Positions 3 through 64,000 of a DNA stretch of 64,000 nucleotides are shown here, piece after piece. The notes beneath the pieces were generated by a model that saw only the letters and a list, made by a program, of their open reading frames with translations, made no database searches and had not been told where the DNA came from. Source of the DNA: Monocercomonoides exilis PA203 (taxonomy: Eukaryota > Protista > Preaxostyla); the NCBI GenBank assembly GCA_001643675.2, contig LSRY02000013.1, positions 1,240,001-1,304,000 of the forward strand, given 5' to 3'. Each line of letters starts with the position of its first letter. Positions within the stretch are counted from its first letter, which is position 1. The position numbers and the translations under genes are program-made.

Positions 3-2531
3 GAGGGAGGAATTCTTGAAATTGTGAATTGCTCATTCACCACAAAACAATTGACGGACGGAGTTAATGCAACTGTTGCAAACATTCCATTTCACATTAT
101 CAACATGGAAAAAGGAGAATTTCAACTTGATGGATGCACAATATCAAATCTCAATCTTCGTGAATCAGCTTTGCATCTTTCATCTTCTCTTCCATCAGTT
201 ATTTATTTATTAACGATTAACAATTCAACAATAGAAACCTCTTTGATAGGTATTAATGAATGTGGACAATTAACAATCAAGGATTTCAATACAGAAAATA
301 TTTCAGTTGAAGGAAATGAAGAATCATTGATATCTTGCTTGACAATGAAAAAGACAGTGCAATTGGCAAATTGCACAATGAGAAAAACAAATTCAAAGAC
401 CACAAAAGGAAAATTGATAAAACTGGAGGATTGTTTGGATGTGAAAATTGATAGTTGCATTTTCGATGGAATGACAAAGGAAAGAAACGAGAAGAATTTG
501 AATATTGAAGAAGAGATATGCAGATGGGAAGGATCTCTTGTGGATATTGTGAAGAGTTCTGTGTTTATGAAAGACATAATATTCTCGAATTCAGCAGAAG
601 GTGGAATAACAATGAGTGGAGGAAATGTGATAATTGAAGCCGGGAATTTATCAAGCAATAATCCATTCATTGAAAAATATCCCTCACTTCGTAGAAACAT
701 CATTTGTTCGGAGTCTGCATCGCTGTCCATTTCCAGCTTGAAAGGAGGAGATGGGTTGATGCCCAATTCTTCTCTTTGGATCCTGAATGATGGATGCATC
801 CTCGAAGGAATTATTGGAGAAAGGCCATCTCCATTTTTCATTCCAAAGCTCGAAGAGGCGTCTCTCATTGATAATGGAAACAATGTTTCAATAAAATTCA
901 AGGGATCTCTTTTTGTGCCATGTGACTTGTCATTCAGACTGGTGTATAAAACAGGGGATGTGGAGTTGGTTGAGACATATCCTTTTGAGGATGATGATTT
1001 TGTATCTGAAGATGAAGTGATTGGAACAATCCCATCAGAAAATATTTCAAAGATCGGAGATGAAACAGAGGTTTCTGTGATGATTCTGTTTGGAAAACAA
1101 TTGGCTGCGACTTCTCCACAGATACTGAAGAACAGAAGTGAGTCCAATGTGAATGGAGATGAAAGGATTTCTGAGGGAGGAAAAGAAGGAAAATCTTATT
1201 TGTTGCTCATTGTTATCATCCTTGTTGTGGTTTTGTTGATTGTTCTTATTGTTTCTGTTATTCTTGCAGTCAGATGGAGAAAGGCAAAGAATGAAAACAA
1301 AGATCTGAGAGAGATTGTGAATGATACTGTGAGAAAAGATCCAAAGCTGATTGAAATGACAACAATGGAGATGTCTCCTGAGGAGCAGTGGAGGAGAGCT
1401 GAGAGAGAGGCTGAGAAGAAGAATGAAGAGAGGATCAAGAAGAGAATATATGATACGAACATGCAACACTCTGAGTCATCAGAGCATTTGCTGGCTGAGA
1501 GCGGATCAACTGAATATATATTGGGGAGAGATTCAGACAAGATTCCTGATTGGGCATTGGAAAAAGTGGAAGAGGAAGAGATTAGAAAGAAAACACCATC
1601 ACCATCAATTTCTTCAACATGTTCAACTGATTCAGATTCAACATTTGTTCGGAGAGAGGATCTGTGCCCAACCACATCATCGATGTCGAATCTGGTGGAT
1701 GCAATGGCCTGTTCATCGCCTCATGAGAAACTGATTGTTGATCTGAGGGATTCGTTGTTTATGTTGTTGCACGGAAGGAATAAGACAAAGGAGATGGCGA
1801 TTGGCACATTGAAGGAGAGGGAACAGACAGCTGCTCAAATCTTGTTCTGTGTGGCTAATCTCTCACTTCACTCGTTTGATGAAATGGAAAGCCCTCTTCA
1901 ATCTCTTGCCAATCTGAGCCCTCACATTGTATTATTCTCGGAGCACATGGTCATCTGCATCGTGATGTATTCAGACTTATTGTCTGATGATGATTCTGAT
2001 TCATCATCGATCTCATCATCAACTGTTGTAACATCTGCAAGTGATAATGATGATGATGACGATGACTCTCTTCTCTCATCTGCCTTTGAGGATGAGGATA
2101 CATTCAAAAAGGAGTGTTTAAGGTGGAAGGCACCGGAACTGTTGATCAACAAGAACATGGAAGCATCAAAAGAGTCGGTTTCATTCTCGATCGGGATGAT
2201 GCTGTGGGAGTGTCTGACACTCCAGATCCCGTTTGGTGATTATGAAGCAGAGGTGGCTGGGCAGAAGATAGTGAATGGTGAGAGGACAGATATGGCTGCA
2301 GTTAGTGGCTCTTCTTTTTGTGAGTTAATAAAGTTGATGGTGAGTGAGAAACAGAGTGCAAGGCCAACACTGAGCGATCTGAAACGAGAATTCATCCAGA
2401 AATTCCCAGCTGGAGCTGTGATTCTCACCGTGTCTGATGCAGTCACAAACCAAGAAGGATCTCGAGAAAAATCAAAAGAGGAGCAATCTGAATCTTTGGA
2501 TTCTTCAGAAATAATGTTTATCAACAGCTAA
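3..2531 (+). CDS. Large single-pass receptor-like protein, 5'-partial: Cys-rich ectodomain, TM helix, TKL-like pseudokinase tail (type A)
   Basis: The frame is open from the window edge (EGGILEIVNC...). TM segment YLLLIVIILVVVLLIVLIVSVILAV is followed by basic RWRKAK. Kinase C-lobe motifs RWKAPE, FSIGMMLWECLTLQIPF and RPTL are present; HRD and DFG are absent. The ectodomain closely matches that of the 57413-64000 gene. Confidence 0.85.
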   Translation, partial: EGGILEIVNCSFTTKQLTDGVNATVANIPFHIINMEKGEFQLDGCTISNLNLRESALHLSSSLPSVIYLLTINNSTIETSLIGINECGQLTIKDFNTENISVEGNEESLISCLTMKKTVQLANCTMRKTNSKTTKGKLIKLEDCLDVKIDSCIFDGMTKERNEKNLNIEEEICRWEGSLVDIVKSSVFMKDIIFSNSAEGGITMSGGNVIIEAGNLSSNNPFIEKYPSLRRNIICSESASLSISSLKGGDGLMPNSSLWILNDGCILEGIIGERPSPFFIPKLEEASLIDNGNNVSIKFKGSLFVPCDLSFRLVYKTGDVELVETYPFEDDDFVSEDEVIGTIPSENISKIGDETEVSVMILFGKQLAATSPQILKNRSESNVNGDERISEGGKEGKSYLLLIVIILVVVLLIVLIVSVILAVRWRKAKNENKDLREIVNDTVRKDPKLIEMTTMEMSPEEQWRRAEREAEKKNEERIKKRIYDTNMQHSESSEHLLAESGSTEYILGRDSDKIPDWALEKVEEEEIRKKTPSPSISSTCSTDSDSTFVRREDLCPTTSSMSNLVDAMACSSPHEKLIVDLRDSLFMLLHGRNKTKEMAIGTLKEREQTAAQILFCVANLSLHSFDEMESPLQSLANLSPHIVLFSEHMVICIVMYSDLLSDDDSDSSSISSSTVVTSASDNDDDDDDSLLSSAFEDEDTFKKECLRWKAPELLINKNMEASKESVSFSIGMMLWECLTLQIPFGDYEAEVAGQKIVNGERTDMAAVSGSSFCELIKLMVSEKQSARPTLSDLKREFIQKFPAGAVILTVSDAVTNQEGSREKSKEEQSESLDSSEIMFINS

Positions 2532-4623: not shown

Positions 4624-4801
4624 AGGGTTGCATGGGGCATAAAACCTTAAGCTTGTTAAAAAATGTTATTTTTTGATTTTTTTTCATTTCATTTCAATTA
4701 AAAAAATAAAAAATTATTATGATCTTAAAAATATTATTAAAAAAATGAAAATATCAACAGAAATAAAATTAAAAGAAGGTCAGAAAAAATTACAGAGAGC
4801 A

Positions 4802-16326: not shown

Positions 16327-17116
<790 letters not shown>

Positions 17117-17335
17117 ATAAAAGAACATGAAAAAATAAAGTTGATACAACTGAAAAGCATTTGATTCACAAAAGCATCAAAATGTTATCAAATTCTCCTT
17201 AAACTCATTCGAATAGCAAGAGCACATTAAAAAACAAAAAAATACAACATTTTCCCTTCACCTTCTCCCCTTTTCTTCAAACACACCTTCCCCTCCTCTC
17301 TTTCTTTCTCTCTTTTCTTTCTCTCTTTCTTTCTC

Positions 17336-26072: not shown

Positions 26073-31642
<5,570 letters not shown>

Positions 31643-34138: not shown

Positions 34139-34291
34139 TACGAAGCAACAATATTAATAATGCTTTTCAAAAGTTTCAATTTGTGTATTTCTATTCAATT
34201 ATATTTTTTTTTTGCAAATTTCTCTATCTTTAACTCCCTTAATAAATGAAAACAGATATCAATTTTTCTAATTGTAGATCTTGTGATAGAG

Positions 34292-37200
34292 ATGCAGTTA
34301 TCGGTTATATTTTTCACATTCCTAGCATGCATTTTTAACGGCAATGCTGAAGAGAATAAGTATTCTATCGAGCAACAACCTGACGATGAGCGCGAAAGCG
34401 AGAAGATATTTTTAAATCCTCAGGTGCACAGTCATCTTGGATATTCATCGATACCTAAAACATTTTACAACAATTCATTTCATTGCATGAGAAAATTTCA
34501 GCAGAGCACCAGCGTTGGAAACACTGAAGTTGAAGGAGAAATCGAAAAGATCAATTTCAGAAATAATATGAAGGAAACCAGAAACATTTCGCAGACTTTT
34601 GCACCAGAAACATCAAGCAAATATTTTATGCGCTATTCCAAAAAATACTTCAGTGCGCACATCCAAAGTGAGATTGAGGGATGCATTTGTGGATGGAACT
34701 CATCCATTGAATTGTGGGAGATTGAGCTGGTGGGAGGTGAGTGCGGGGGTGTGATGCGTGGAAGGAAGGGGAGTGTGGTTGTTGTGAGAGGGTGCGTTGT
34801 GGGGATGGGGAAGGACAATGAGGCAGGGGCATTTGATCTGAGTGGGAGCATTGGGGTGTTGGCAAACATCACATTGAAAGGGTGGGGAAGAGAGGGAGAG
34901 ATATATTCAGGCAGACTGTTTGGAGGGAAGGGAGATGGAGGGGAGAAGAGTGGAGGTGAAGAAAAAGAAGGAGGAGAAAGAGGAAGGGGAAGAGGAAGAG
35001 AAGGAGATGGTGATGGAGAAGACATTGAAGGGAGTATTTCGGTGAGTGAATCACGATTCTCTTCTTTTTGTGTCTCATCGGCTCCATTCCTCTCATCACC
35101 TTCAATATCCCTTATATCCCTCTCCAAATTATCATTTTTCAATATCTCAACAGCAAATGATGCATGCTCATCTCCAACAGCTTCATTTTCCCAAACCTCA
35201 TGTCTGATGAATAGTTGTTCATTTTCGTCTGTTTGTGATGCATATGATGGCGGGATTGTTCATTCCCTCAACAACCCCTATGCCACTCTGACTGTTTCAA
35301 ACACTTCATTCATTGGATGTTATCGAGTAAGAAATGTTGAACATATTGGAACTGAAGAAGAAAAGAAACATCCAGGGAGGCAAAACATTACAGAGAATGG
35401 AGAAAATACATTTGTTTGGTGCGAATGGAACGGATCAAAGACAACAGGAGAAAGTGACTCATGGTCGGATGGAATATCGAGTGGTGGGGCCATCTGCATG
35501 TACAGTCAATTGTCGGCAGCTGTTTCAGTTTCGCATTGTGCATTCAATGAATGTGTCGCGCATTGGTGCGGTGGAGGTATTAGTTGCTATTATATTAGAT
35601 CTGTTGAGATTGAAAACAATTCGTTCAACTCATGCACAGCTCAAACTTATTTAGGAGGAGGAATGTGCATTGTGTCAATTTCATCGTGTGTTCGGATCAG
35701 CGGATGTGAATTCCAGAATTGCAAAGCAATTGGCTATGGTGGAGGGCTTCATCTCGAAAATTTTCAGGTTTCTGGAATAGGGTGTGTTGGAAATGAAAGT
35801 GGAGAAGGGGAGAGCGCGTGTGTGTTTGACTGCTGTTTCACTTCATGCTCAATCACAAATAATTATGGAGGAGGCATGCGTTGTTACAATTTTCCTGTTC
35901 AAGTTAAGATTAGAAGCATTCAATTTATTTCATGTTCTGCATTAAGAGAAGGCGGAGGATTAGGCTTTGATCCAAATCGAGCAACAGCACCTGATGATGG
36001 AATCTATTGTTATTTTTTGTTTTTTCACGAATGCAAATGTTCTGCAAATACGCTATATGGGCATGATGTGATGTACTATGATCGCTATGGTCTTTTTAAT
36101 TCTTCAAACAATCCTTTCTATGAATGCTACACAACAAATGAAAATGACAAGAGAGTGTGTTATGGATATGATTATTCGAGTACAGGGAGTTGGAAATATC
36201 AGCACACAGAAAAGTGGGATTGGTTGAAGGACAAGACGATTTATGTTTCAGTGAAAGGGAATGATTCATCTCTTCTTTGCGGGGCAAATGAAACATTTCC
36301 TTGTCTGACAGTGAAAAAGGCGTTTGAGATGTGCGAAATACAGATAAGCTTGGCAATCACGTTGATGGAAGGGAATCATGTGAGTGAGACAACAACTATT
36401 GAGATTGGAGAAAAGAAGATTTTAGTCATTGGGACGGGCAAAGATAAGAGTTCGATTGGAACAGGAGCACTTTCATCGGTAGGAGCGTTGTTCAGTGTGA
36501 CAACAGGTAACCTTGGTTTATTGCACATGAAAGTTGATTGCAACTCAAATGCAAGTCCTTCTTCACCGAGTGTGGTTGTGGTGTCTGATGGGGGTGGGTC
36601 ACTCTCGTTGGAGGATGTTGTGATCACCACGAGTAAAACAGGAGACTATGTGATGTCGTCGTCAGTGTTTGTGGTGCCGCTGTCGCAGCTGTCGATGGTT
36701 GGTGTGGAGATCAAAGATATGAATGTCTCAAAACCATTGTTTTCCGAGCCGAATCTCTCTTCTCCTTCTTCTTCTTCTTCATTGTCGTCATCTGCACTGT
36801 ATCTGACAGCCACAGCATCAAGAGATAGCGTGCTTGCGAATGCAAAGGTGACGAATGTGAAGTTGACTGAAGGAGATGGGGTTGTTGTAGCAAAGAGTGT
36901 GAAGGTGGGAGAGACATTTGTGGTCAAGAATATGACAATTGAGGATTGCGAGTGCAAGGATGGAAGTGGTGGCGGGATCAAGGTTGAGATGGAAACAGAT
37001 ACATGCAAGCTTCAGGTTGAAAGAACAACAGCAATCAAGAGATGCAGAAGTGGCAAATATGGAGGAGGAATGATGCTGTATCTGGCTGAAAACTCGATTG
37101 ACTTCTCAATTGTGTCAGTTGACTTTTCAGGGTGTTCTGCTTCATTGGGAGGGAATTATGTGTTTGTGAATGGGAGCAATTCAGCGAGCTGGGGAATAAC

Positions 37201-40200
37201 AACAGAAAAGCTGGATGTCCAACATGACGATTCAAAATACAATGAGCTTGTGGGATATGATCGGAGTGACACAACAATGGGGCTGTTCCCATTGAATGTA
37301 TATTTGGACAGATATCCAGATGCAGCACATGTGGGGAAGGGGAAGAATGGGCTGGGTGGATACAACTCGTGGTTCTGTGGGTTTGATTATTATCCGTGTG
37401 CAACCATCACCCATGCAACGCAGGTGAGATATCCCGGCACAAACAAGAAGATCGAATTGGATTCAGGATATGAGCTTGCTGAAGAGGTTGGAATGACAGA
37501 TGGCCATGAATGGGAGATTTCATGTGCAACAAAAGGAATGGAGGTTGGGGTGAAAGCACCAGAGAATTTTGAGTCGTCATGTCTGATTGATGTTCAGAGC
37601 ATATGTTCAGTGAGAAACATCAAATTCTGTATTCCATCTGCTCTGTCTTGTGCATCATCATCATCTCTGATCACATCCAACTCCACACTCCTCACGCTCA
37701 CTGATTGTTCTGTTGTTTGTTCCTCTGAGAATTCCATTGGATACAGTTTTGTGAATGTGATTGGGGGAAAAGTGAAAGTGGAGGGATTGGTGATCACAGA
37801 AACATTGATATTTGGAGAACATTCACTGATTGAGTTTGGTGAAGGGGTGGAATCAGTTGTGTTTTGTGGATGTGAGGTGAACAACATTGAGAAGAGAAGT
37901 GGAGATGGAGGATGGGTGAGTGGGGTGGTTGGGCCAGAGAGAGATGAGGGGAAGAATGGGATAATTGTGATTGAATCGTGTGTTGTGAAGGGGTGCAGGT
38001 GTGCTGGTGGAAGAGGAGGAGGGATGAGTGTTGTTGTGAAGGGGGAAGGGAGTGTTATTGTGAATGGGAGTTGTGTGATTGATGGGTGTGAGGCGAAGGG
38101 TTCAGGGGAGAGTTCAGATGGGAAAGGGGGAGGGAGAGGGGGAGGGATGATGATTGTGATGGAGAGCAGGGATGGTTCAATGAAAATGGAATCTGGAAGA
38201 GAGGGTTTGTTTGTGTTTGGAGAGAATAACAAAGCTTCATATGGGAAAGATGTGTTTGTTGGTTGTGGTGGAGGAGTGTTATTGGAATCGAAAGTGAATG
38301 GGAGTTCATTTGCATTTTTTGATTATCGTGTGATTCCAACAGATGTGTTGAAGTTGTGTGGGAGTGAGGATGGGAGAGAAGGGGAAGTGATTCCGCTGTT
38401 TGTGTATTTGTGTTCAATTGGCTCGAAGTTGAGAGTTGATGGGAGAGGAGAGAGGGCACTGGATCAGAGCCATTGTGGGTTTGAGGAGTTTGGGTGTTTG
38501 ACGATTGACTATTGTGTTGAGAAGAGAGCGAGCAGCAATGTGAATGAAATCGAAGTTGCCTCAGAATCATGGATAAAGAATGAGATGAAAGTGGCATTAT
38601 TTGGTGTGAGTGTTTCAGGGAAAGAAGAAGGGATGAGGGTGATTGTGAGAGATGAAGGATCGATAAGCCAGAATAACCTTATTGAGTGCACAAAATCATT
38701 TGAGATGAGACATTTGTCATTTGTGCTGAATGAAGAGATGAATGGGAGGAGAAGTGGATTTATCCACTCCTCCTCATCATTATCAACCATCACAATGACC
38801 AGCTGTTCAATCTCATTTGGAAATGATGAAATGATTGGATACAATGTGATATGTGTTGAGGGAGGAGGGCTGATTGTGGATGGATTTGTGATGGAAGGGG
38901 GAGTGACACTGAAGATGAATGGGAAATCGCCAATTGTTATTTCAAATGGAGTTGAATTGGAGATGAATCACAGTCGAATGAATGGAGTGGGAGTTACAGG
39001 TGGAAATGGAGGAGGAGGAGGAGGATGTTTGAATGTGGAGATGAAAGGAGGAAGTGCAAAAATTGAAGAATGCAATTTGTCATCAGTGTGTTCAGGGGGG
39101 AGCGGGATGAAAGGGGGAGGGATGAAGATATCAGTGGGGAAGGGAGGGAGGTTGGAAATGAAAAATGTGAAATATTCAGGGTGTGAAGTGCCAAGAGAGG
39201 ATATTGAGGAGGGAGGGAGAGGAATGGGAGGAGGGATGTTTGTGAAGCTGGCAGATGAGATGGGAACATTTGTGATGGAAGGGATGGAATTTGTGGGATG
39301 CGATGCTTGGAAGGGGAAGAATATGTTTGTTTCTGGATGGGATCTGAGAGAGATTGTGAATGAGGAGCACCTGAAATGGGAGATGAGTGAAAGGGGGTTG
39401 AGATCGTTGGATGGGTTGTGTGGATGGGAGAGGATGACAACAGGAGAGGAGGGATATGTGATTCCTTTGGTTGTGTATTTGTGGAGAAACTGGAGTGGGG
39501 ATGGGTTTGTTTCTCGAGAGAAAGGAGGAGACTTCAGTGGGTGTGGGTATTCAGAAGCACCCTGCTCATCGATTGACCACTTGATATCACTTCGATATCC
39601 AATTCTTGGAGAAGGGGATACACACATCAGGATTGTGGGATCAGGGCTGCTGAGTCATTCCATTTCATTTTCATCATCAATATCAGAGTCACAAAAAGTG
39701 GTGATTGAAGGAACAAAGAAAGGGACAGGAGTGACGCTCAGTGATGAAGATGAGAATGATCTGGATAATGGCTCAATGATATCCTCGAATGTGAGTCTGT
39801 CATTTGTGAATGTGTCATTCACCAAGCCAGCCATCACAACCCATCATGAAGCGTTGATTGAATCCTCTGGAGCAAACACATTATTGTCGGTTTCAGATTG
39901 TTCATTTGGCCCATGGAGAGGGGTGGCAGAAAGTTTTGGATATTATGTGATGAGAGTGGATGGGGGGAGTGTATTGATTGAGAAATGCACGATGAATTTG
40001 ATTTCTGATTTGAAAGGGTTGATTGCCTTCAGGCCTAGTGCAGCTGAGGTGACTGTTCAGAATATGAACATTTCATTTGTCGATGTGACAGAAAGAAGCC
40101 TGATTTCGATGATGGAAGAGGCGGACAAGATGAATGGAGAAAAGAAGGTTTTTTCAAATGGGAACAGACCAGTTTTGAGGGTTGTTGGATGCTCATTTTC

Positions 40201-43200
40201 CAATATCACGAATGAAGGGATTGGAGCGAGTGTTGTTGATGTGGGATCATTTGAGGATGGAGTGGAGTGTGTGGTGGATGAATGTTCGATGTCGAGTTGC
40301 AAGAGTGGTTTGAGCATTGAAGGAGGGGGGATGAAAGTGGTGCTGAAGAGCGAAGAAACAGTTTTTAAAATCAACGATAGCTCTTTTTCGATGTGCAAGT
40401 GCTCGAAGGAATCAGGGTGTGGAGGAGGGCTGTTCATTGATGGGTCTGACCCACATGCGAATTATGGAAATGAAAGTCAGATTCCGCCTCTGAATTTCAA
40501 GATTGTGAACATCCTGTTTGTGATGAATGAGGCACATGTTGGGAAAGACATATTTGTCAGATGCCACTCAATTGCTCATCAGATCAACGAAACACTGTTT
40601 GCACTGAACTACAACCAGGAATCACTGAACTCAAACAACTCGATCTGTGGGAGAGATGCTTCGAGCGAGGGAGATGTTGATCTGATTCCGCTGATCACAT
40701 TCTATTATGGGCTTCAAGTGTTTCTTAGTTCTACAGGGACGGATGGGAGAAGATGTGGGGCTCAAATCAATCCATGTTCCAGTATCAACTGCGGGATTGA
40801 CCACATCCAGGAAGGGGTGATGAATGCGATTCTGATTGATGGGGAAGGGACTGTTTCGGGAGAATGTGCAATTGAAGATCTGGTTGTGACTTCATTCAAA
40901 AAGGCACAGGCGATTGTGAAGCTGAAATCCAAGATTGAAAAATCGACAGAGAAGGATTGCATCATGGAGTTTGTGAATGAATGTGGAGTGGAGAGGTGCT
41001 CATTCCAGTTTGAAGATGGATTTGAATCAATTCACAATTATCTTTTGAAGGTGAAGAATGGATCACTGGAGATACAGAAATGTGAATTCTTCTCCTCTAC
41101 CGATGAACTGAAATTGAACAATTCAGTTATGAGTGTTGAAAGCGGAGAACTGATGATATTTGATTCAACATTCAGAGATGTTCATTCTGCAAGATCGGTG
41201 CTTTTATTCAACAAAGAATCCTATGTGATAATTGATGAAACAAGAATATTGAATGTGGAATGTGAGAAAGATGTTGTGAGTATTGGAGGAAAAGCGAAGG
41301 TGGAGATGAAAGAAATGGAAGCTGAAAATGTGACTCTGTTGTCGAGAAGGTGCGTGATTGCGATGGAAGACGCTGAGCAAGAGGTGAGCATGCTGAACTG
41401 CTCGTTTGGTAAATATGTGAATTCGGTTGATAAGGGAAGCATGATGCAGATCAGGAATTCCAAGGATGTGAGGGTTGAGATATGTGTGTTTGATGGAGAA
41501 AAAGAAGCAGATGCAGTCAATGAAGAACAAGAAAGAGTAGAGAAATTATGCAAATGGAATGGGTCATTGGTTGATATTGAGAGGAGCAATGTGGAGATGA
41601 AGGAAACAACAATCAGAAACAGCAAGGCAGGTGGGTTGTGGGCGAGTGGAGGAAGTTTAATGATTGAAAAAGGAGAATTTGAGAACAACAACCCAGAGAT
41701 TGAAGGATATCCATCAGCTAGAAGGAATGTGATCTGTGCAGGGAATGGGGGATTGAATGTTGTTTGTTTGAAAGGGGGAGATGGACTGAAAGATAACTCA
41801 TCGCTTTGGATGTTGAATGATGGGTGCAGCTTTGAAGGAATCGCAGGAGAAAGGTTATCATCATTTTTCATCCCAGTTCTGGAAGAAGTGAAGAATACAA
41901 CGCAGCCAACAGGAGAAATGGAACTGATCATTCATGGGAAGTTGCTTCTTCCGTGCAATCTGTCAGTGAAGATAAGCATGAAAGACGGGGAAGTTGAGCG
42001 TATCCAAACACAAAAGATCGAAGAAGATGGGTTTGTATCAGAGAACGAGGTGCATTTAAGAATTTCATCAGAACTGATGAAAGTGATGGAGAAGAAAACA
42101 GAAGTGAGTGTGTGGATGGTGTTTGGAAAAGATGAATCATGTTTTTCGAATGGAATTGTGGTGATAAACAAGAGTGAGTCTCAATCAAAAGGAGATGAGA
42201 ATGAGAATGAAGGAGATGACAATATCAATAAAGGAGAATCGAATAATGAATGGATGTTGATTGTTATTGTTGTGATGGGTGTGCTGTTTGTGATATTCAT
42301 GTTTATATTTGCTGCAGTTGTTGTGCTTTTGCGAAAGAAACTGAGGAAAGCCGAAAAGAGAGTTGAAAAAGAGAGATTAGAAAACGAGCAGATAATGGAG
42401 AAGCTTGAGAAGAGAAGAAGGGAAAACAATGGAGGAAGCTTTGAGATGAGTGAAATGCCACCCACATTGCTGGAAGGGATGACAAGTCAGATTCCACTTC
42501 TGATTGACAACGATGAAGAAGATCTTCCAGATCCTCCTTCAACGAACAGCGATGAAATTCTGAATGAAAATGATCTGCCCGATCTGGTACCTCCATTGCC
42601 ATTTTCAGAGAATGCTTCTGCTTCTGGAATACCTCAATCTCATCCATTCAACGTGATATCAGCGAAGAAGCCATTTCGAGAAAAGGAGAAAAGGAACATC
42701 AAAGCATTGCATTCGGTGATTCATTCAGTTCAAGGTGATTTCACGCTGGGAACAAGAGCGATGGATGTTGTTGATGGGAAGGAGGTGGTTTTGGCAGTGG
42801 CAGAGCTGTTTGAGCATTTGATTTCAGTTGGAGACGAAAGGGTGGAAATGATGGCAAGACAGCTGTGCCCATATGCGATATTTGTTGAAGAAGGAAACGA
42901 AAATGAAATATACCTATTGACAGAAGAACTGACTGATGAAAAGCAGAAAGAAGAAATGAAGCGATGGAAGGCACCTGAAGCGGGAGATGAAGAAGAGGGA
43001 ATTGAAAAGGCAGTTGTTTTTTCACTTGGACTGATTCTGCATGAGATGACAACAGGGGAAGTGCCATTGAGTGAATGCAATGCAGAAGAAGCACAGGAGA
43101 TGATAAGGGATGGAGTGCGACCGCTGACAGAAGGAATCGAAGGAGAGGAGCTGATTGAGGTGATGGAGAAGATGTGGACAGATGAGCCAAATGATAGACC

Positions 43201-43255
43201 CAGTTTGACAGAAGTGAAAAAATCAATAAAGAAAATAATGATAGAGGAAGGATGA
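34292..43255 (+). CDS. Giant (~2990 aa) intronless type I membrane receptor-like protein: signal peptide, Pmp/pectin-lyase-like beta-helix repeats, TM helix, TKL-like pseudokinase tail (type B)
   Basis: Signal-like MQLSVIFFTFLACIFNGNA. Repeated F..C.A...GGG[ILM] rungs and CG....PC.[TS][IV] modules. TM segment WMLIVIVVMGVLFVIFMFIFAAVVVLL followed by RKK. Tail motifs RWKAPE, VFSLGLILHEMTTGEVP and RPS. Confidence 0.88.
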   Translation: MQLSVIFFTFLACIFNGNAEENKYSIEQQPDDERESEKIFLNPQVHSHLGYSSIPKTFYNNSFHCMRKFQQSTSVGNTEVEGEIEKINFRNNMKETRNISQTFAPETSSKYFMRYSKKYFSAHIQSEIEGCICGWNSSIELWEIELVGGECGGVMRGRKGSVVVVRGCVVGMGKDNEAGAFDLSGSIGVLANITLKGWGREGEIYSGRLFGGKGDGGEKSGGEEKEGGERGRGRGREGDGDGEDIEGSISVSESRFSSFCVSSAPFLSSPSISLISLSKLSFFNISTANDACSSPTASFSQTSCLMNSCSFSSVCDAYDGGIVHSLNNPYATLTVSNTSFIGCYRVRNVEHIGTEEEKKHPGRQNITENGENTFVWCEWNGSKTTGESDSWSDGISSGGAICMYSQLSAAVSVSHCAFNECVAHWCGGGISCYYIRSVEIENNSFNSCTAQTYLGGGMCIVSISSCVRISGCEFQNCKAIGYGGGLHLENFQVSGIGCVGNESGEGESACVFDCCFTSCSITNNYGGGMRCYNFPVQVKIRSIQFISCSALREGGGLGFDPNRATAPDDGIYCYFLFFHECKCSANTLYGHDVMYYDRYGLFNSSNNPFYECYTTNENDKRVCYGYDYSSTGSWKYQHTEKWDWLKDKTIYVSVKGNDSSLLCGANETFPCLTVKKAFEMCEIQISLAITLMEGNHVSETTTIEIGEKKILVIGTGKDKSSIGTGALSSVGALFSVTTGNLGLLHMKVDCNSNASPSSPSVVVVSDGGGSLSLEDVVITTSKTGDYVMSSSVFVVPLSQLSMVGVEIKDMNVSKPLFSEPNLSSPSSSSSLSSSALYLTATASRDSVLANAKVTNVKLTEGDGVVVAKSVKVGETFVVKNMTIEDCECKDGSGGGIKVEMETDTCKLQVERTTAIKRCRSGKYGGGMMLYLAENSIDFSIVSVDFSGCSASLGGNYVFVNGSNSASWGITTEKLDVQHDDSKYNELVGYDRSDTTMGLFPLNVYLDRYPDAAHVGKGKNGLGGYNSWFCGFDYYPCATITHATQVRYPGTNKKIELDSGYELAEEVGMTDGHEWEISCATKGMEVGVKAPENFESSCLIDVQSICSVRNIKFCIPSALSCASSSSLITSNSTLLTLTDCSVVCSSENSIGYSFVNVIGGKVKVEGLVITETLIFGEHSLIEFGEGVESVVFCGCEVNNIEKRSGDGGWVSGVVGPERDEGKNGIIVIESCVVKGCRCAGGRGGGMSVVVKGEGSVIVNGSCVIDGCEAKGSGESSDGKGGGRGGGMMIVMESRDGSMKMESGREGLFVFGENNKASYGKDVFVGCGGGVLLESKVNGSSFAFFDYRVIPTDVLKLCGSEDGREGEVIPLFVYLCSIGSKLRVDGRGERALDQSHCGFEEFGCLTIDYCVEKRASSNVNEIEVASESWIKNEMKVALFGVSVSGKEEGMRVIVRDEGSISQNNLIECTKSFEMRHLSFVLNEEMNGRRSGFIHSSSSLSTITMTSCSISFGNDEMIGYNVICVEGGGLIVDGFVMEGGVTLKMNGKSPIVISNGVELEMNHSRMNGVGVTGGNGGGGGGCLNVEMKGGSAKIEECNLSSVCSGGSGMKGGGMKISVGKGGRLEMKNVKYSGCEVPREDIEEGGRGMGGGMFVKLADEMGTFVMEGMEFVGCDAWKGKNMFVSGWDLREIVNEEHLKWEMSERGLRSLDGLCGWERMTTGEEGYVIPLVVYLWRNWSGDGFVSREKGGDFSGCGYSEAPCSSIDHLISLRYPILGEGDTHIRIVGSGLLSHSISFSSSISESQKVVIEGTKKGTGVTLSDEDENDLDNGSMISSNVSLSFVNVSFTKPAITTHHEALIESSGANTLLSVSDCSFGPWRGVAESFGYYVMRVDGGSVLIEKCTMNLISDLKGLIAFRPSAAEVTVQNMNISFVDVTERSLISMMEEADKMNGEKKVFSNGNRPVLRVVGCSFSNITNEGIGASVVDVGSFEDGVECVVDECSMSSCKSGLSIEGGGMKVVLKSEETVFKINDSSFSMCKCSKESGCGGGLFIDGSDPHANYGNESQIPPLNFKIVNILFVMNEAHVGKDIFVRCHSIAHQINETLFALNYNQESLNSNNSICGRDASSEGDVDLIPLITFYYGLQVFLSSTGTDGRRCGAQINPCSSINCGIDHIQEGVMNAILIDGEGTVSGECAIEDLVVTSFKKAQAIVKLKSKIEKSTEKDCIMEFVNECGVERCSFQFEDGFESIHNYLLKVKNGSLEIQKCEFFSSTDELKLNNSVMSVESGELMIFDSTFRDVHSARSVLLFNKESYVIIDETRILNVECEKDVVSIGGKAKVEMKEMEAENVTLLSRRCVIAMEDAEQEVSMLNCSFGKYVNSVDKGSMMQIRNSKDVRVEICVFDGEKEADAVNEEQERVEKLCKWNGSLVDIERSNVEMKETTIRNSKAGGLWASGGSLMIEKGEFENNNPEIEGYPSARRNVICAGNGGLNVVCLKGGDGLKDNSSLWMLNDGCSFEGIAGERLSSFFIPVLEEVKNTTQPTGEMELIIHGKLLLPCNLSVKISMKDGEVERIQTQKIEEDGFVSENEVHLRISSELMKVMEKKTEVSVWMVFGKDESCFSNGIVVINKSESQSKGDENENEGDDNINKGESNNEWMLIVIVVMGVLFVIFMFIFAAVVVLLRKKLRKAEKRVEKERLENEQIMEKLEKRRRENNGGSFEMSEMPPTLLEGMTSQIPLLIDNDEEDLPDPPSTNSDEILNENDLPDLVPPLPFSENASASGIPQSHPFNVISAKKPFREKEKRNIKALHSVIHSVQGDFTLGTRAMDVVDGKEVVLAVAELFEHLISVGDERVEMMARQLCPYAIFVEEGNENEIYLLTEELTDEKQKEEMKRWKAPEAGDEEEGIEKAVVFSLGLILHEMTTGEVPLSECNAEEAQEMIRDGVRPLTEGIEGEELIEVMEKMWTDEPNDRPSLTEVKKSIKKIMIEEG

Positions 43256-56000: not shown

Positions 56001-56429
56001 GGTGTGACAACACACAGGGCGCTTGTGAAGATTCCGGCGGTGGGGATCAAGTTCTTCCAGCCAGTCACCCCTCCGAAGGAGGTGTTTGTCAGCCAGTGGC
56101 AGTCTGTGCCCGCAAACTCGCCGATGACAGCCACAGACACGTTCTTCTTTATGAACGCCCCGCTGAATCCGCAGTCGTTCCAGCAGGTAGTAGCGTTCCT
56201 GCAGGGGCCTGCTAAGATGCAGCCTCTTCCCGGCTATGACGACACCCCTCAGACACTCTGCTTTGCTGCGGGCGTGTGCTGCGGGAGCGCGCCACAGCCG
56301 ATGCCGTTGATGTTCAAAATGCAGATGTCTCCGATTGACGGGAAGTTAATATTGACAGTGAAAGGATGCACCCCTCAGGTTGCAGAAGTGACGAAAAAAT
56401 TTGTCATTGAAATGCTGAAGAAAATGTGA
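53080..56429 (+). CDS. AP2A: AP-2 complex alpha subunit (alpha-adaptin), 4 exons
   Basis: GLSHFISDIR, RKKYVLKLMY..DFGHMEA, IPAPWLVVK, DISLRRRAMDVLF and EEL^VLKIAILAEKY; hinge and ear region GKLYEDANL. Introns 53132-53199, 53412-53472 and 54478-54641 keep the frame. Confidence 0.95.
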
Positions 56430-57412: not shown

Positions 57413-60400
57413 TTACATTGTTCTCCGTATTTTCTTTATTGATTTTTTCACTTCTACCAAACTTGGTCTATTATTTGGCTCATCTGCCCACATACTTTCC
57501 ATCAGCTCAACCAGATCTTCTCCTTCGATTCCTTCTGTCAGCGGTCGCACCCCATCCCTTATCATTTCCTGCGCTTCTTCTGCATTGCATTCACTCAAAG
57601 GCACTTCCCCGGTTGTCATCTCATGCAGAATCAGTCCAAGTGAAAAAACAACTGCCTTTTCAATTCCCTCTTCTTCATCTCCCGCTTCAGGCGCATTCCA
57701 TCGCTTCATTTCTTCCTTCTGCTTTTCATCAGTCAGTTCTTCTGTCAATAGGTATATTTCATTTTCGTTTCCTTCTTCAACAAAGATTGAATATGGGCAC
57801 AACTGCCTCCCCATCATTTCCACCCTTTCATCATCAACTGAAATCAAATGCTCAAACAGCTCTGCAACTGCCAAAACCACCTCCTTCCCATCAACAACAT
57901 CCATCGCTCTTGTTCCCAGTGTGAAATAACCTTGAACTGAATGAATCATCGAATGCAATGCTTTGATGTTCCTTTTCTCCTTCTCTCGAAACGGCTTCTT
58001 CGCTGATATTACGTTGAATGAATTATTCTGATGAACTCCAGAAGCAGAAGCATTCTCAGAAAATGGCAATGAAGATTCCAAATCTGGAAGATCATTTTCA
58101 TTCAAAATTCCATCGTTGCTCATCGAAGGAGGATCTGGAAGATCTTCTTCATCGTTGTCAATCAGAAGTGGAATTTGGCTTGTCATCCCTTCCAGCAGCG
58201 TGGATTGCATTTCACTCATCTCAAAGCTTCCTCCATTGTTTTCCTTTCTTCTCCTCTCAATCTTCCCCATTATCTCCTCATTTTCCAATCTCTCTTTTTC
58301 AACCCTCTTTTCGGCTTCCCTCAGTTTCTTTCGCAAAAGCACAACAACTGCAACAAATATTAGCATGAATATCACAAACAGCACACCCATCACAACAATA
58401 ACAATCAAATTCCATGTTGATTTCCCTTCTTTTCCTCCCTCAGAAATCCTTTCATCTCCATTCACCTTGGATTCACTTCTGTTCTTCAGAATCTGCGGAG
58501 AAGTCGCAGCCAATTGCTTCCCAAACAGAATCATCACAGATACTTCTGTTTCATCTGCAATCGTTGAAATATTTTCTGATGGGATTGTTCCAATCACTTC
58601 ATCTTCAGACACAAAACTGTTTTCATCAAATGGATATGTCTCAACCAACTCCACATCCTCCGTTTTGAATATTAATCTGAATGACAAATCACAAGGAAGA
58701 AGAAGTGCTCCATTGAATTTCACAGCAATGTTGCTGTCATTTTCAATGAGAGATGCCTCTTCGAGTTTTGGAATGAAGAAAGGAGATGATCTTTCTCCTG
58801 ATATTCCACCAAGGGTGCATCCATCATTCAGAATCCAAAGAGATGAATTTGGCATCAATCCATCTCCTCCCTTCAAACTGGAAATAGTCAGTGAAGCAGA
58901 ATCAGAGCAAATGATGTTTCGGCGAAGAGAGGGATATTTTTCAACGAATGGATTGTTGTTCATAAACTCTCCTTTCTCAATTGTCACATTGCCAGCAGAT
59001 ATGGACAATCCTCCTGACGAAGAATTCGATATTGTTGTATCTTTCATCATCACAGAACCCTTCTCAATATCCACAAGAGATCCTTCCCATCTGCACATCT
59101 CTTCTTCCTCATTCAAATTCTGCTCATTTCTTTCCTTTGTACTCCCATCAAATATGCAATTGTCCATTTTCACATCAATGCAATCCTCCAATTTCATCAT
59201 TTTCCCTTTTGGTTTGTTAGAATTGACTCCATCCATTGTACAATTTGTCAACTGCATCATCTTTTTCATTGACAAGCAAGATATCAATGATTCTTCATTT
59301 CCTTCAACTGTGATATTTTCTGAATGATACTTTTCCATGTTTAATTGTCCACATTCATTAATATCGATCAGAGAAGTTTCTATTGTTGAATTACAAATCG
59401 TTAATGAATCTATCACTGATGGAAGTGGAGATAAAAGATATAATGCAGATTCATGAAGCACAAGATTTGATATTGTGCATCCATCAAGTTGAAATTCTCC
59501 TTTTTCCATGTTTATTATGTGAAATCGAATATTTGCAAAACCGGTATTTCCTTCTTCTATAAATTTCTTTGAGCTGAATGAACAATTCATAATTTCAAGA
59601 ATCCCTCCCTCTGGTGATATTAATGATTCATGCTGAGAGATGAAATTTGAATCAAACACAAAATTCACTCTCACCAATGAGACTGTTCCGATTGTTGTAA
59701 CCAATGCATCCTTTGTTTTTGCAATCTCTGATTTCACTTCAACCTTGCAATTTTCTCTGCTTTTTGAACTCAGACTCATTTCCTTCAGATTTATCTCTTC
59801 ACCAATCACGCTCTCTCCGACAACAATCATTTGGCTCATGAAATCTGAAGACAGATGCATCAGTCCATAATCAATCGAAGCACATGGAAGTGTGCTTGTT
59901 CCACATTGTCTCTCATTCGATCCATTCACTCTGCTCACAACAATTGTGTCACTCTGATGAATTGTCACAAAATTAATCAGATCTGTATCATTTGTGTGCT
60001 CACAACTATCAATTCCATATATCGCATTGTGGCGAGTATAATGACCTTCTCGAAGATCAAACTGAAATTGGCTTTCATTGATCTGCAATGTGATGTTGAA
60101 ACATTCAATGAAAATATCATTCCCCACTCTTGCTGAATTTGAACTAAACTTCATTCCCACAAATGAAAAATTCAAATCTCCTCTTTCCTTTGTTACTAGA
60201 TACACCCCTCCTCCTTTCCCATTGGTGCAGCTGCAATGGCTGATTGTAGAGTCAATCATCTTCATTGATCCTGAAGAACACAATGTGAAGAATATTGCTC
60301 CTCCTTTTTCACTCAATTCTACCTTGTCTTCTGTAATGTCGCTCTCATTCACAACCAAACATATATTTTTCTCACTCTTTGACTCCAAAATGCTTGCTCC

Positions 60401-63400
60401 ATTGTCACTTCTCTTCACTCCTGAAAATGATGAATTATCAATTTTGAGACTCATTTCCTCTCCTCCTTCATTAATTTTTGTTGCTAATTCGGATCCTTTG
60501 ATCTGAAGAAGACATCCTCTGCTTTCATTCAACGAATCCACTCGAACATTCACAAAATGGCAAGAAACTCCAGCATCGTGAATGACAAATATGTTGTTTC
60601 CAATATTACATGATTCCATCGACAAATCATTCACTTCCACGCTTCCTCCAATTGCATCCACAAACACGCAATCAAATCCATTGTTCACTCCCGCTTCTGA
60701 ATGGAATGAACATCCACTTATCACTAAATTTCCATTTTTGTTTGATATAATTGTTTTGGCTGAGTTGTCAAATCCAGTTGATAGTCGAAGTTGGATATTT
60801 GTCAATTCAAGATGAATATCATTTTTCATGAAATATTCCAGTTGACTTCCAATTGACTTTTCAAAATTCAATATCGCTTTCACATTCTCTTCTCCCATCT
60901 TCACACTCTTTTTGATCCGATAATTTGACATATTGAATGAATCTCGAATAATTGTCGATCCTTCAATCTGAATTGTTTTCATTTCATCTCCCTCTTTCAT
61001 GTTTTCCATCCCTTTCCACATTGTGAAGCATGGCTCTTCTTCACTTCCACAACGCGCAACATCAAATCCTTCTGATGAGATAAATATCTCAAATGAGCTG
61101 TATGGAATCAGAAACATGAACAAATCCTTTTCTTGGTGATAGTTATCACTTCCAACAAACAAATTGTCATCATCCTTCATTGAGGAATAATCAAACTTGA
61201 ATGACTCATTTGCCACAGAACTATTCAAATCCTTTCCCAAAATGAACACATTTTTTCCAATTGTTGCTTTGTTGTTCTCAAATGTTAAGTCAGATTCAAA
61301 AAAAATTGGCTTTTCATTCAAGCAATTCTGACAATCCAAATACAAGAATCCTCCTTTTCCATTGTTCTTTAAAAGCGAACATGATGATGCATTTGTTGAT
61401 TTCATCACCAATTCTTCATTCCCTTGCAATGTCACTTTTGCAACACCTCCTTCTTCGCTGCCTTTGTTCTCAATATTCGAAAAGTTGTTGCTTTCAAACA
61501 AAACGGAAGAAGATATCATCAATGGATATTCACAAAATGAGGAATCATCCAAACTGCATGCTTCCATTGTGCAATTCAACAGTTTCACTCTGAATTCGTC
61601 TTCATTCACAGTTCCGTGTGAAGGAGAAATTGAAAACAGCGCGACTGATGATTTCACATCTGAAATCGTGACAGAGTCCAGCTCAACCATCTTTCCCGTT
61701 GATCTGATCAAGGAAAATCCAATTGTGCTTCCCTTCCCTCCAATCACACTGATCGCACAATTCTTCATGTGCAACTCTCCATTTTGAGTGGTTGATTCAA
61801 TCACCGATGTGATTGTTCTGTTAAATCTTGATGGAACAATAATCCCAATAAATTCCATTTCTGTCAGTGATGTTGATTTCATGATGCATTCTTCAGAACC
61901 ACTAACTTCTCTTTTGCATTCAACCTGCACAACTGCACCCTCCTTTGCTTTCACATTGATTCCTCCAACATCCAAGCATCCTGTTACAGATGAATTTGCA
62001 CATAGAATAATCTCCTGTCTTATATTCAGCGTTCTCTTCAAACGCCCCATTCCATAATTCACATTCAAACATGGTGCCTTTTCTATTCCACAATACACCT
62101 TCTCCATTCCAGATGTTCCATCCACATATACAGAGTCAGCTGTATATCCTTCAAGAAATATAAACAAGTCAGCATCCCAATCATTAAACATATCTGTTCT
62201 ATCATGTCCAACAATCGAGTTGTCTTTCTGAGTGATGCTTCTCATGAAGGCAAACAAGGGCTCTTTCACAGAAGCGACAAGGGAATCACACACAAAATAC
62301 ACATCTCTTCCTACACTGGCCTTGTTGGCTGAAAACACGATATTGGTGATGGAAAAGGAGGATTCCGACACTTCTGAATTATCCTTGTACTCGATCATAA
62401 GAGCACCGCCTCTTCCTCCAGAACTTGTATCCTCGCTCACAGAGCAGCTGGAGAAATTTGTGTCACTCACTGAAAAGGAGTTGGCAGGGGCAGATGAGGC
62501 GAATGAGATGCACCCGCCATTGGTGGGAGTCTGTTGGCTCAACTGTTCTGAGTTGATACTGGTGATGGTGCAGTTGGCGAGGGAGAGGGAGAGGGCAGGG
62601 GAGGTGGCAGAGGAGAGGACACAGCTGGTGGGAGTGGAAGTGGAGGTGATATCGGTGATGCTGGAGGAGTTGAGGGTGAGGGGAGCTGTGAGGGAGGTGA
62701 GGTGGAAGATGCTTTGACTGTTGAGGGCGAGACTGGTGATTGCTGTGTGATTGAGGGCGAGGGAGCCAGCAGTGAGGAAGAAGAGGGGAGTTGTGATTGA
62801 TGATGAAGATGAGGCTGTTCCGGTGATGGTGGTTGTGTTGAGTTTGAGGGAAGGGGAGTTTTCGGAGAGGTGGAAGAGGATGGGGGTGATAGGATTTGAG
62901 GAGTTGTGAGCGATGGCGAGGGCAGAAACTGTGAGGGAGCCCTGAGTTTGTTGGAAGAGGGCAGAAGAGGCAGATGGATCTGGTAAAGAGGAAGAAGACG
63001 ATGATGTTTGAGAAATGCCATATGAAGAGATAATTGTGGTATCTGTGCCATTTCCGGTGATGTTGGTGTCAACTGCGCTGAAAGTGAGTGTTTGAGAAGG
63101 AATAAATATTGAGTTGAGGAGAGTGAGGGAGGTGTTTTGGAGGTGGGAAATGAAGCCGTTGAGGGCATACTCGATGGTGGCACATGGTGTGTGCTGAGGT
63201 CTACCACAGGTTTCCATATCAATTCCGCTATTGGACACGATTTTGTTCTGGGCTATGAGAGGAAGCCAGCCATTGTACTCAACATTATCAGCTGTTCCTT
63301 GATTCCAAACTCTTTGAGTGATGGTTGTTGAGCCACACTGATTGAATGGTGATTGAGTGATACTTGTGCCATTGAAGAACACATCATTTCCTCTTCCATT

Positions 63401-64000
63401 TGCAGCTGCGTTGCCATCAAAGAAACAAAATGTGATGAATTTATTTCCGCTCATCCAGTCGTATGTCCTGGTGCAATGAATGCCAGCACCTCCATAAGTC
63501 GATGAAGCATTCAGCTTATTATTTAAGAGCTGGCACTCTTGGAGTAAGCACTGTTTTGGTTTTTGTGGTGGAAGCCAATTGAATGTTACTGCACCAGTCG
63601 CATCACCTCCGGTATTTGCAATGCAGACACAATTTTTGAATAGGAATTGACCGTCTGATGGCATGTTATCGAGACCAAAATACCAACCAGTTCCACACCA
63701 GTTTGTGATTGAACAACTTTCCACTCTGTTATCTTGGAATGCCCAAACAGAATTTGATTGTGGATAAGCTATGCAAGTTGCTCCTCCATAAGCAGCATAA
63801 CAACTGGTGAAATTGGATTTTGCGATATCAACTTTTAACAAATAATCGCAACGTATTGCTCCACCATGATCACCAGTTGAACAATTGCTGAATGAACAAG
63901 AAGTGATTGTGAGATTTGCATTTGCGCGGTTAACATAAAGTGCACCACCAGATGAAGATCCACCAGTTGAATCATTCCATTCGCACCATTCGAAGCGATG
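57413..64000 (-). CDS. Giant receptor-like protein, 5'-partial: beta-helix ectodomain, TM helix, pseudokinase tail (type B)
   Basis: The frame is open to the window edge (HRFEWCEWNDSTGG..GGALYV). Same CG...PC modules as the other receptors. TM and tail are nearly identical to those of the 34292 gene. Confidence 0.88.
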   Translation of the reverse strand, partial: HRFEWCEWNDSTGGSSSGGALYVNRANANLTITSCSFSNCSTGDHGGAIRCDYLLKVDIAKSNFTSCYAAYGGATCIAYPQSNSVWAFQDNRVESCSITNWCGTGWYFGLDNMPSDGQFLFKNCVCIANTGGDATGAVTFNWLPPQKPKQCLLQECQLLNNKLNASSTYGGAGIHCTRTYDWMSGNKFITFCFFDGNAAANGRGNDVFFNGTSITQSPFNQCGSTTITQRVWNQGTADNVEYNGWLPLIAQNKIVSNSGIDMETCGRPQHTPCATIEYALNGFISHLQNTSLTLLNSIFIPSQTLTFSAVDTNITGNGTDTTIISSYGISQTSSSSSSLPDPSASSALFQQTQGSLTVSALAIAHNSSNPITPILFHLSENSPSLKLNTTTITGTASSSSSITTPLFFLTAGSLALNHTAITSLALNSQSIFHLTSLTAPLTLNSSSITDITSTSTPTSCVLSSATSPALSLSLANCTITSINSEQLSQQTPTNGGCISFASSAPANSFSVSDTNFSSCSVSEDTSSGGRGGALMIEYKDNSEVSESSFSITNIVFSANKASVGRDVYFVCDSLVASVKEPLFAFMRSITQKDNSIVGHDRTDMFNDWDADLFIFLEGYTADSVYVDGTSGMEKVYCGIEKAPCLNVNYGMGRLKRTLNIRQEIILCANSSVTGCLDVGGINVKAKEGAVVQVECKREVSGSEECIMKSTSLTEMEFIGIIVPSRFNRTITSVIESTTQNGELHMKNCAISVIGGKGSTIGFSLIRSTGKMVELDSVTISDVKSSVALFSISPSHGTVNEDEFRVKLLNCTMEACSLDDSSFCEYPLMISSSVLFESNNFSNIENKGSEEGGVAKVTLQGNEELVMKSTNASSCSLLKNNGKGGFLYLDCQNCLNEKPIFFESDLTFENNKATIGKNVFILGKDLNSSVANESFKFDYSSMKDDDNLFVGSDNYHQEKDLFMFLIPYSSFEIFISSEGFDVARCGSEEEPCFTMWKGMENMKEGDEMKTIQIEGSTIIRDSFNMSNYRIKKSVKMGEENVKAILNFEKSIGSQLEYFMKNDIHLELTNIQLRLSTGFDNSAKTIISNKNGNLVISGCSFHSEAGVNNGFDCVFVDAIGGSVEVNDLSMESCNIGNNIFVIHDAGVSCHFVNVRVDSLNESRGCLLQIKGSELATKINEGGEEMSLKIDNSSFSGVKRSDNGASILESKSEKNICLVVNESDITEDKVELSEKGGAIFFTLCSSGSMKMIDSTISHCSCTNGKGGGVYLVTKERGDLNFSFVGMKFSSNSARVGNDIFIECFNITLQINESQFQFDLREGHYTRHNAIYGIDSCEHTNDTDLINFVTIHQSDTIVVSRVNGSNERQCGTSTLPCASIDYGLMHLSSDFMSQMIVVGESVIGEEINLKEMSLSSKSRENCKVEVKSEIAKTKDALVTTIGTVSLVRVNFVFDSNFISQHESLISPEGGILEIMNCSFSSKKFIEEGNTGFANIRFHIINMEKGEFQLDGCTISNLVLHESALYLLSPLPSVIDSLTICNSTIETSLIDINECGQLNMEKYHSENITVEGNEESLISCLSMKKMMQLTNCTMDGVNSNKPKGKMMKLEDCIDVKMDNCIFDGSTKERNEQNLNEEEEMCRWEGSLVDIEKGSVMMKDTTISNSSSGGLSISAGNVTIEKGEFMNNNPFVEKYPSLRRNIICSDSASLTISSLKGGDGLMPNSSLWILNDGCTLGGISGERSSPFFIPKLEEASLIENDSNIAVKFNGALLLPCDLSFRLIFKTEDVELVETYPFDENSFVSEDEVIGTIPSENISTIADETEVSVMILFGKQLAATSPQILKNRSESKVNGDERISEGGKEGKSTWNLIVIVVMGVLFVIFMLIFVAVVVLLRKKLREAEKRVEKERLENEEIMGKIERRRKENNGGSFEMSEMQSTLLEGMTSQIPLLIDNDEEDLPDPPSMSNDGILNENDLPDLESSLPFSENASASGVHQNNSFNVISAKKPFREKEKRNIKALHSMIHSVQGYFTLGTRAMDVVDGKEVVLAVAELFEHLISVDDERVEMMGRQLCPYSIFVEEGNENEIYLLTEELTDEKQKEEMKRWNAPEAGDEEEGIEKAVVFSLGLILHEMTTGEVPLSECNAEEAQEMIRDGVRPLTEGIEGEDLVELMESMWADEPNNRPSLVEVKKSIKKIRRTM

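Follow-up and report, generated by a model that had tools for sequence, protein, structure and literature searches.

How did a single gene come to carry the ectodomain of one paralog and the cytoplasmic tail of another? Gene B raises this question in the gut protist Monocercomonoides exilis, the first eukaryote shown to be without mitochondria. It is one of three large continuous ORFs of one family (genes A, B, and C) within the 64,000-nucleotide stretch of DNA analyzed here (the window; Table 1). An earlier reading based on the letters alone (hereafter the sequence-only reading) had described these genes as intronless in this stretch, which holds since all three ORFs are uninterrupted. In the genome assembly, the open frame of gene B comprises 2551 aa, and the tail region of gene C lies convergent with it at a distance of 14 kb. 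The same reading had proposed that recombination or gene conversion at one sharp site in the juxtamembrane linker couples ectodomains as sensors to alternative tails as signalling modules, which would result in a combinatorial repertoire of receptors.

Table 1. Coordinates of the three paralogs in the window and breakpoints in further loci of the family.
Feature	Position	Strand	Description and basis
Gene A	3..2531	+	5' end cut by window; X-type proximal ectodomain 1-1195; TM + class-A tail ~1254-2531
Gene C	34283..43255	+	2990-aa paralog; Y-type proximal ectodomain; class-B TM + tail 42250-43237
Gene B	57413..64000	-	Giant intronless type-I membrane protein; 5' part beyond window edge
Gene B TM helix + class-B cytoplasmic tail + stop codon	57413..58414	-	92.1% nt identity to gene C 42250-43237; Pfam PF07714; structure model
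Gene B breakpoint interval	58409..58418	-	blastn, maximum chi-square scan, junction alignment, independent contigs; invariant W codon inside
Gene B membrane-proximal ectodomain "X"	58419..59613	-	82.3% nt identity to gene A 1-1195; sliding nearest neighbour; model + fold search
L018	-64 to -51 nt from TM		Parents L050 / L022
L021	-92 to -90 nt from TM		Parents L045 / L005
L022	-92 to -85 nt from TM		Parents L035 / L018
L014	-257 to -252 nt from TM		Parents L015 / L010

In a three-way protein alignment, genes A and B are 60–93% identical per window of 30 residues over the last ~400 ectodomain residues up to an EGGKEGKS linker, and 7–30% identical beyond it. Genes B and C, compared in the same way, are 17–63% identical in the ectodomain and 79–100% identical in most of the TM helix and tail. 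On the nucleotide level, blastn aligned gene B 59613-58419 with gene A 1-1195 (82.3% over 1196 nt) and gene B 58415-57428 with gene C 42250-43237 (92.1% over 988 nt). Both resemblances described in the sequence-only reading, i.e., a proximal ectodomain like that of gene A whose similarity then stops, and a TM helix and tail like those of gene C from the W codon onward, were thus recovered, with coordinates accurate to within a few bases (W codon at 58414-58412). The switch is confined to about 10 nt around this codon. A maximum chi-square scan with genes A and C as parents placed the breakpoint within +/-2 nt of the W-codon column (value 790.6, reached in 0 of 1000 permutations); A-like informative sites make up 523 of 602 on its left and 15 of 522 on its right. 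The codons ACA and AAT flank the invariant TGG and were found only in gene B and locus L004 among ten aligned loci.

Such a junction could stem from an assembly chimera, in which reads of two paralogs were wrongly merged at a short common stretch, and the family is indeed very large and overlaps with the "unclassified repeats" of the published assembly. However, independent reads cross the junction. Logan contigs, which are short contigs and not long reads, were counted as bridging when they crossed 58409-58418 with at least 31 nt on either side. Contig X4 from a DNA run of 2016 spans 58379-58455 with 0 mismatches. Contig X2 from an RNA library of 2024, which belongs to a different study, spans 58215-58505 with 1 mismatch, and contig X6 from a second 2024 RNA library of that study spans 58369-58471 with 0 mismatches. 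The two RNA contigs are compatible with transcription, without proving it. The same junction also recurs in other copies: L004 (C7:1176629) carries it including the ACA and AAT codons; its identity to gene B amounts to 95% over the junction, and elsewhere the two differ. In a third copy (C7:1380113-1381996), coordinates and identities place a class-B tail (91% identical) against an X-type ectodomain (78%) at the exact residue found in gene B. Furthermore, the paralogs are 80–92% identical and thereby too diverged to collapse. Bridging DNA and RNA contigs, together with the recurrence in diverged copies, rule out an assembly artefact with near certainty. A single event gave rise to the junction, and at least three genes of one contig carry it today. 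This event is old, as the copies sharing the junction differ by 5–20%.

The relatives of gene B were traced in sliding windows of 150 nt. Between -1503 and -600 nt, tail-B genes (L020, L011, L009, and L024) predominate as nearest relatives, except for three windows led by the tail-A genes L032/L031. The stretch between -680 and -80 nt is closest to the tail-A genes L058, L034, and L032 (87–93%), and the junction itself to L004 (95%). In coordinates of the window, tail-A genes are the nearest relatives over about 58417-59095, and tail-B genes farther upstream. Within the tail, the nearest gene shifts every 150–300 nt through a succession of class-B genes. L019, for example, is 99% identical to the tail of gene B over 150 nt, yet the tail proteins are only 77% identical; it also reaches 99–100% identity to L001 or L004 over windows of 150 nt, i.e., near-identical tracts are embedded in a diverged background. 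Profiles of left/right discordance within the classes revealed mosaicism spread across ectodomain and tails, and a GENECONV-like scan returned 177 pairs above the global 5% threshold. Gene B is hence a fine patchwork and not a two-piece chimera. About 650 nt of tail-A-like proximal ectodomain are placed between a tail-B-like distal ectodomain and a tail-B-like TM helix and tail, and the sharp W-codon junction is the downstream edge of this patch.

In a simpler history, one crossover, either unequal or illegitimate, would have taken place at the TM boundary via TGG/TTGATTGT microhomology, by which a class-B tail replaced the whole class-A tail of an X-type gene. Gene B would then be the product of a genuine domain swap, and not a class-B gene with a conversion patch. 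The sharpness of the junction, with two lineage-specific codons beside the invariant TGG, and the B/C similarity continuing through the entire tail would both fit. One crossover does not account for the distal ectodomain of gene B, which is nearest to tail-B genes, so that the A-like stretch is bounded on both sides, at about -650 and at 0. It also conflicts with a tail that is itself assembled from several class-B genes, and with a 3' flank that is like neither the A-type nor the C-type flanks. We therefore regard this history as improbable.

The flanks were informative in their own right. The B/C match ends about 12 nt short of the stop codons, blastn revealed no homology between the 3' flanks of genes B and C, and the 3' flank of gene B matched none of the other 59 loci of the family sample introduced below; homology with the tail relatives therefore stops at the stop codon. 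A degenerate palindrome containing genes B and C was discarded, as the two have only the 988-nt tail-coding stretch in common in inverted orientation and nothing in the flanks. Elsewhere in the family, four tail-A genes (L031-L034, at C7:1239754, C7:1144402, C30:719434, and C7:1391140, respectively) have a 3' flank of 0.9–1.5 kb in common (84–90%), which identifies them as segmental duplicates including downstream DNA.

For a family-wide view, we compared 60 loci, half of them closest to tail B and half closest to tail A (30 each), and included 1.5 kb of the ectodomain upstream in every case. These loci and 120 annotated proteins were picked by similarity to genes A, B, and C from several hundred to more than 1000 copies, and the true donors may thus lie outside this subset. 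The tail tree shows a clean A/B split, with a separating branch as long as about 7 substitutions per site, and needs 1 class change. The ectodomain tree of 59 loci demands 7–8 changes of tail class, with the proviso that trees of mosaic sequences are averages, and a single tail-B clade was rejected on the ectodomain data (AU test, delta lnL 1172, p = 0.0004). Addition of the annotated proteins resulted in 148 unique genes (84 with tail class A, 57 with class B, and 7 with class C). Their proximal-ectodomain tree requires 24 tail-class changes, compared to 51.6 for shuffled labels, and the strongly supported branches alone demand at least 16–18. The test that the sequence-only reading had suggested, a comparison of separate ectodomain and tail trees, therefore came out as discordance, and its core proposal, that recombination or gene conversion joins ectodomains and tails of different lineages, is borne out by the 7–8 and 24 class changes in the two samples.

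The proposed position of the exchanges did not hold up equally well. Seven parent–recombinant triplets gave maximum chi-square values of 156–791, each reached in 0 of 1000 permutations. The breakpoints had been expected to cluster at one sharp juxtamembrane site; apart from the junction in gene B, they were located at about -55, -90, and -255 nt (Table 1). By eye, L014 (C49:159824-163804) appears as a triple mosaic of Y-type ectodomain, A-type linker and TM helix, and class-B cytoplasmic tail; the class switch in this locus would therefore fall just after the TM helix and not before it. We further calculated, per gene and position, the share of locally nearest genes with the same tail class. 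This coupling is 1.00 in the TM helix and tail, decreases to 0.94 at -9 aa, 0.82 at -54 aa, and 0.72 at -84 aa, and reaches a plateau of 0.6–0.7 from about -100 aa out to -414 aa (random pairing, 0.47). As the decay extends over about 100 aa, ectodomains and tails become uncoupled across a zone, and GGKEGKS is not the one site at which this happens. A lone hot spot at this motif is ruled out by the mosaicism throughout ectodomain and tail and by breakpoints that are specific to each event. Of the mechanism put forward in the sequence-only reading, the joining of lineages by recombination or gene conversion stands, and the linker as the one sharp site of exchange has to be given up. Single-linkage clustering of linker and TM segments lumped too much for discrete cassette types.

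Identity between A- and B-class genes amounts to 40–80% just upstream of the TM helix and is at background level after it. The conserved islands in this upstream part encode ILFG, FILKNRSE, and GDER, and the class-switch breakpoints are found in or beside them. One could read the ~100-aa juxtamembrane zone, which comprises the Ig/Fn3-like domain, the disordered linker, and the first part of the TM helix, as a selected recombination hinge, with DNA islands kept so that ectodomains could be joined anew to three pseudokinase tail classes of distinct function; we consider this unlikely.

The explanation we favor, with a probability of roughly 0.8, is that the mosaic of gene B reflects ectopic (non-allelic) gene conversion among paralogs, in which exchanges between tail classes end where homology ends. 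Frequent ectopic conversion or recombination between paralogs would turn every gene of the family into a patchwork. For gene B, the sequence of events may have started with a class-B gene resident at the locus. Sequence from a tail-A gene would then have replaced the last ~650 nt of its ectodomain up to the limit of A/B homology, and the resulting junction would have spread or been inherited among neighbours on contig C7. We infer both the direction of this transfer and the end of the tract at the homology boundary. The ACA and AAT codons could alternatively mark an imprecise join of the microhomology type. Junctions would be resolved in or beside the short conserved islands ILFG, FILKNRSE, GDER, and W-LIVI, and the juxtamembrane zone is probably where exchanges between tail-A and tail-B genes end because the DNA of the two classes cannot be aligned beyond it. 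In M. exilis, HR was reported as complete and NHEJ as absent (PMC6759080), a combination that would favor repair from paralogs. Over evolutionary time, ectodomain types would thereby come to be combined with three tail classes, for which a dedicated swapping mechanism seems neither needed nor indicated.

Besides the three paralogs, the window contains fragments of the family within elements that the sequence-only reading had described as Pack-type. Element A harbors a 534-aa ORF (12047-13651, minus strand), an isolated N-terminal "head" of the family without body, TM helix, or tail, which is 58% identical to residues 258-752 of gene C (DNA, 72% over 1069 nt). A chimeric fragment is encoded by a 173-aa ORF in element B (16609-17130, plus strand): its residues 2-25 match the ectodomain of gene B about 730 aa upstream of the TM helix, residues 26-125 correspond to tail A at the beginning of its cytoplasmic part, and the remainder contains a long low-complexity run of (RE)n. 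Between the receptor genes, several ORFs resemble transposases by eye, of the DDE/pogo and ISXO2 types (4673-6388, 10513-11235, 21519-22319, and 51610-52302).

The presence of family fragments within the transposon-like elements at 12047-13651 and 16609-17130, and of transposase ORFs nearby, lends some appeal to the idea that a programmed diversification system, or capture by Pack-type elements, shifts tails or ectodomain cassettes between receptors. However, the homology of the gene B tail to gene C ends at both limits of the tail-coding DNA, and neither terminal repeats nor shared flanks were seen in the comparisons. The 5–20% difference between junction-sharing copies points to an old event and not to ongoing switching, and breakpoints vary from event to event. 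Such a system is thus very improbable as the source of the mosaic, and ectopic gene conversion remains our preferred reading.

Further features of the window concern its composition. A gene resembling, by eye, an adaptor-complex large subunit (AP-2 alpha) is present in two ORFs (53482-56429, plus strand); it is convergent with gene B and sits between the unique 3' flank of gene B and gene C, and its GC content is about 0.51 in surroundings of 0.27–0.39. A long trinucleotide repeat with more than 150 isoleucine codons (28751-29250, minus strand) forms the end of ORF 28751-31231, and the neighbouring ORFs show extreme low-complexity richness in Ser, Glu, and Lys.

Regarding the encoded proteins, the family follows a common plan of parallel beta-helix, Ig/Fn3-like domain, disordered linker, TM helix, and remnant of a kinase C-lobe. 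The last 500 ectodomain residues of gene B were modelled with a pLDDT of 80.6. The model comprises a right-handed parallel beta-helix, an Ig/Fn3-like sandwich of ~100 residues (residues 385-480), and a disordered linker of about 15 residues ahead of the TM helix. Foldseek matched it to phage tailspikes and PL6 lyases (E-values of 3e-5 or weaker, probability up to 1.0), with low TM-scores of 0.2–0.36, and the Pfam Beta_helix match was below the cut-off (17.5 vs 25.9 bits). Judged by the model, the proximal ectodomain of gene B is predicted to adopt a parallel beta-helix fold. Chlamydial Pmp-like repeats (PF02415 Chlam_PMP) surfaced only as a weak feature-based lead, and no piece of genes A, B, or C matched this profile at E ≤ 0.1.

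In the tails, PF07714 was detected with 48.7 bits (tail B) and 33.2 bits (tail A; cut-off, 23.1), and the match is limited to profile positions 157–257 of 258, which correspond to the C-lobe. PDB kinases align to the tail mostly only from the APE region onwards. Direct reading of tail B revealed GRQ and TEE at the positions expected for HRD and DFG. In the tail model, the TM helix runs on as a long helix, followed by a disordered stretch of ~90 residues and a helical domain; a beta-sheet N-lobe is missing from the model, which has a low-confidence pLDDT of 56.8 and is relied on for this point only. Based on profile matches and model, tails A and B are kinase-derived and, lacking a complete catalytic domain, cannot be active kinases. 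In the combinatorial repertoire envisaged in the sequence-only reading, the putative signalling modules would be tails of this catalytically dead kind.

When the C-terminal 741 residues of gene C were used as a query, 334 matches were obtained; all 120 matches listed come from M. exilis, and several carry the name "putative Protein tyrosine and serine/threonine kinase". A first look at the genome assembly (82,301,135 bases in 101 contigs) yielded 1100–1700 family candidates. The family of genes A, B, and C is the published "protein tyrosine kinase / TKL" expansion of M. exilis. With 332 "protein tyrosine kinases", mostly TKL, it ranks as the organism's largest gene family (Karnkowska et al. 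2019, PMC6759080; Treitli et al. 2021, PMC8767320), and it overlaps with the "unclassified repeats" of the published assembly (PMC6759080; PMC8767320). Both papers give counts and a name only for the kinase family, and "gene conversion" is mentioned 0 times in them. The beta-helix ectodomain, the loss of the kinase N-lobe, the tail classes, and the mosaic evolution, all described here, are not part of these accounts (PMC6759080; PMC8767320). Literature searches on the M. exilis kinase family did not reveal a description of recombination.

Large surface-protein families with chimeric genes, produced by ectopic recombination or gene conversion among paralogs, include Plasmodium var, the VSG mosaics of Trypanosoma, and Giardia VSP, and their breakpoints tend toward conserved stretches between variable blocks. 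The M. exilis family resembles them as a mosaic multigene family of surface proteins. In contrast to var, VSG, and VSP, it is without evidence of antigenic variation, mutually exclusive expression, or ongoing somatic switching; moreover, M. exilis is a commensal, and the exchanged unit includes a cytoplasmic pseudokinase tail. A second comparison concerns the transmembrane kinases of Entamoeba and other receptor-kinase expansions in protists and plants, which are single-pass proteins that join a large, repetitive ectodomain to a kinase-related tail. These expansions are lineage-specific, and many of their members are predicted to be inactive. The M. exilis family shares these features and the topology; however, its ectodomain combines a tailspike-like parallel beta-helix with an Ig/Fn3-like domain in place of CXXC/EGF or LRR repeats, and its tail keeps only the C-lobe.

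The underlying process, ectopic gene conversion in a surface-protein family, is already familiar. What it means for M. exilis is that a family named after kinases, which may fill a sizeable share of the genome yet has been published only as a count of "tyrosine kinases", is revealed to consist of beta-helix surface proteins with dead-kinase tails. The mosaic nature of this family explains much of the "unclassified repeat" content of the genome. If the juxtamembrane zone were a selected hinge after all, M. exilis would possess a truly combinatorial receptor repertoire built without introns. The repeated re-pairing of ectodomains and tails by recombination near the membrane illustrates in concrete terms how a receptor family free of introns diversifies.
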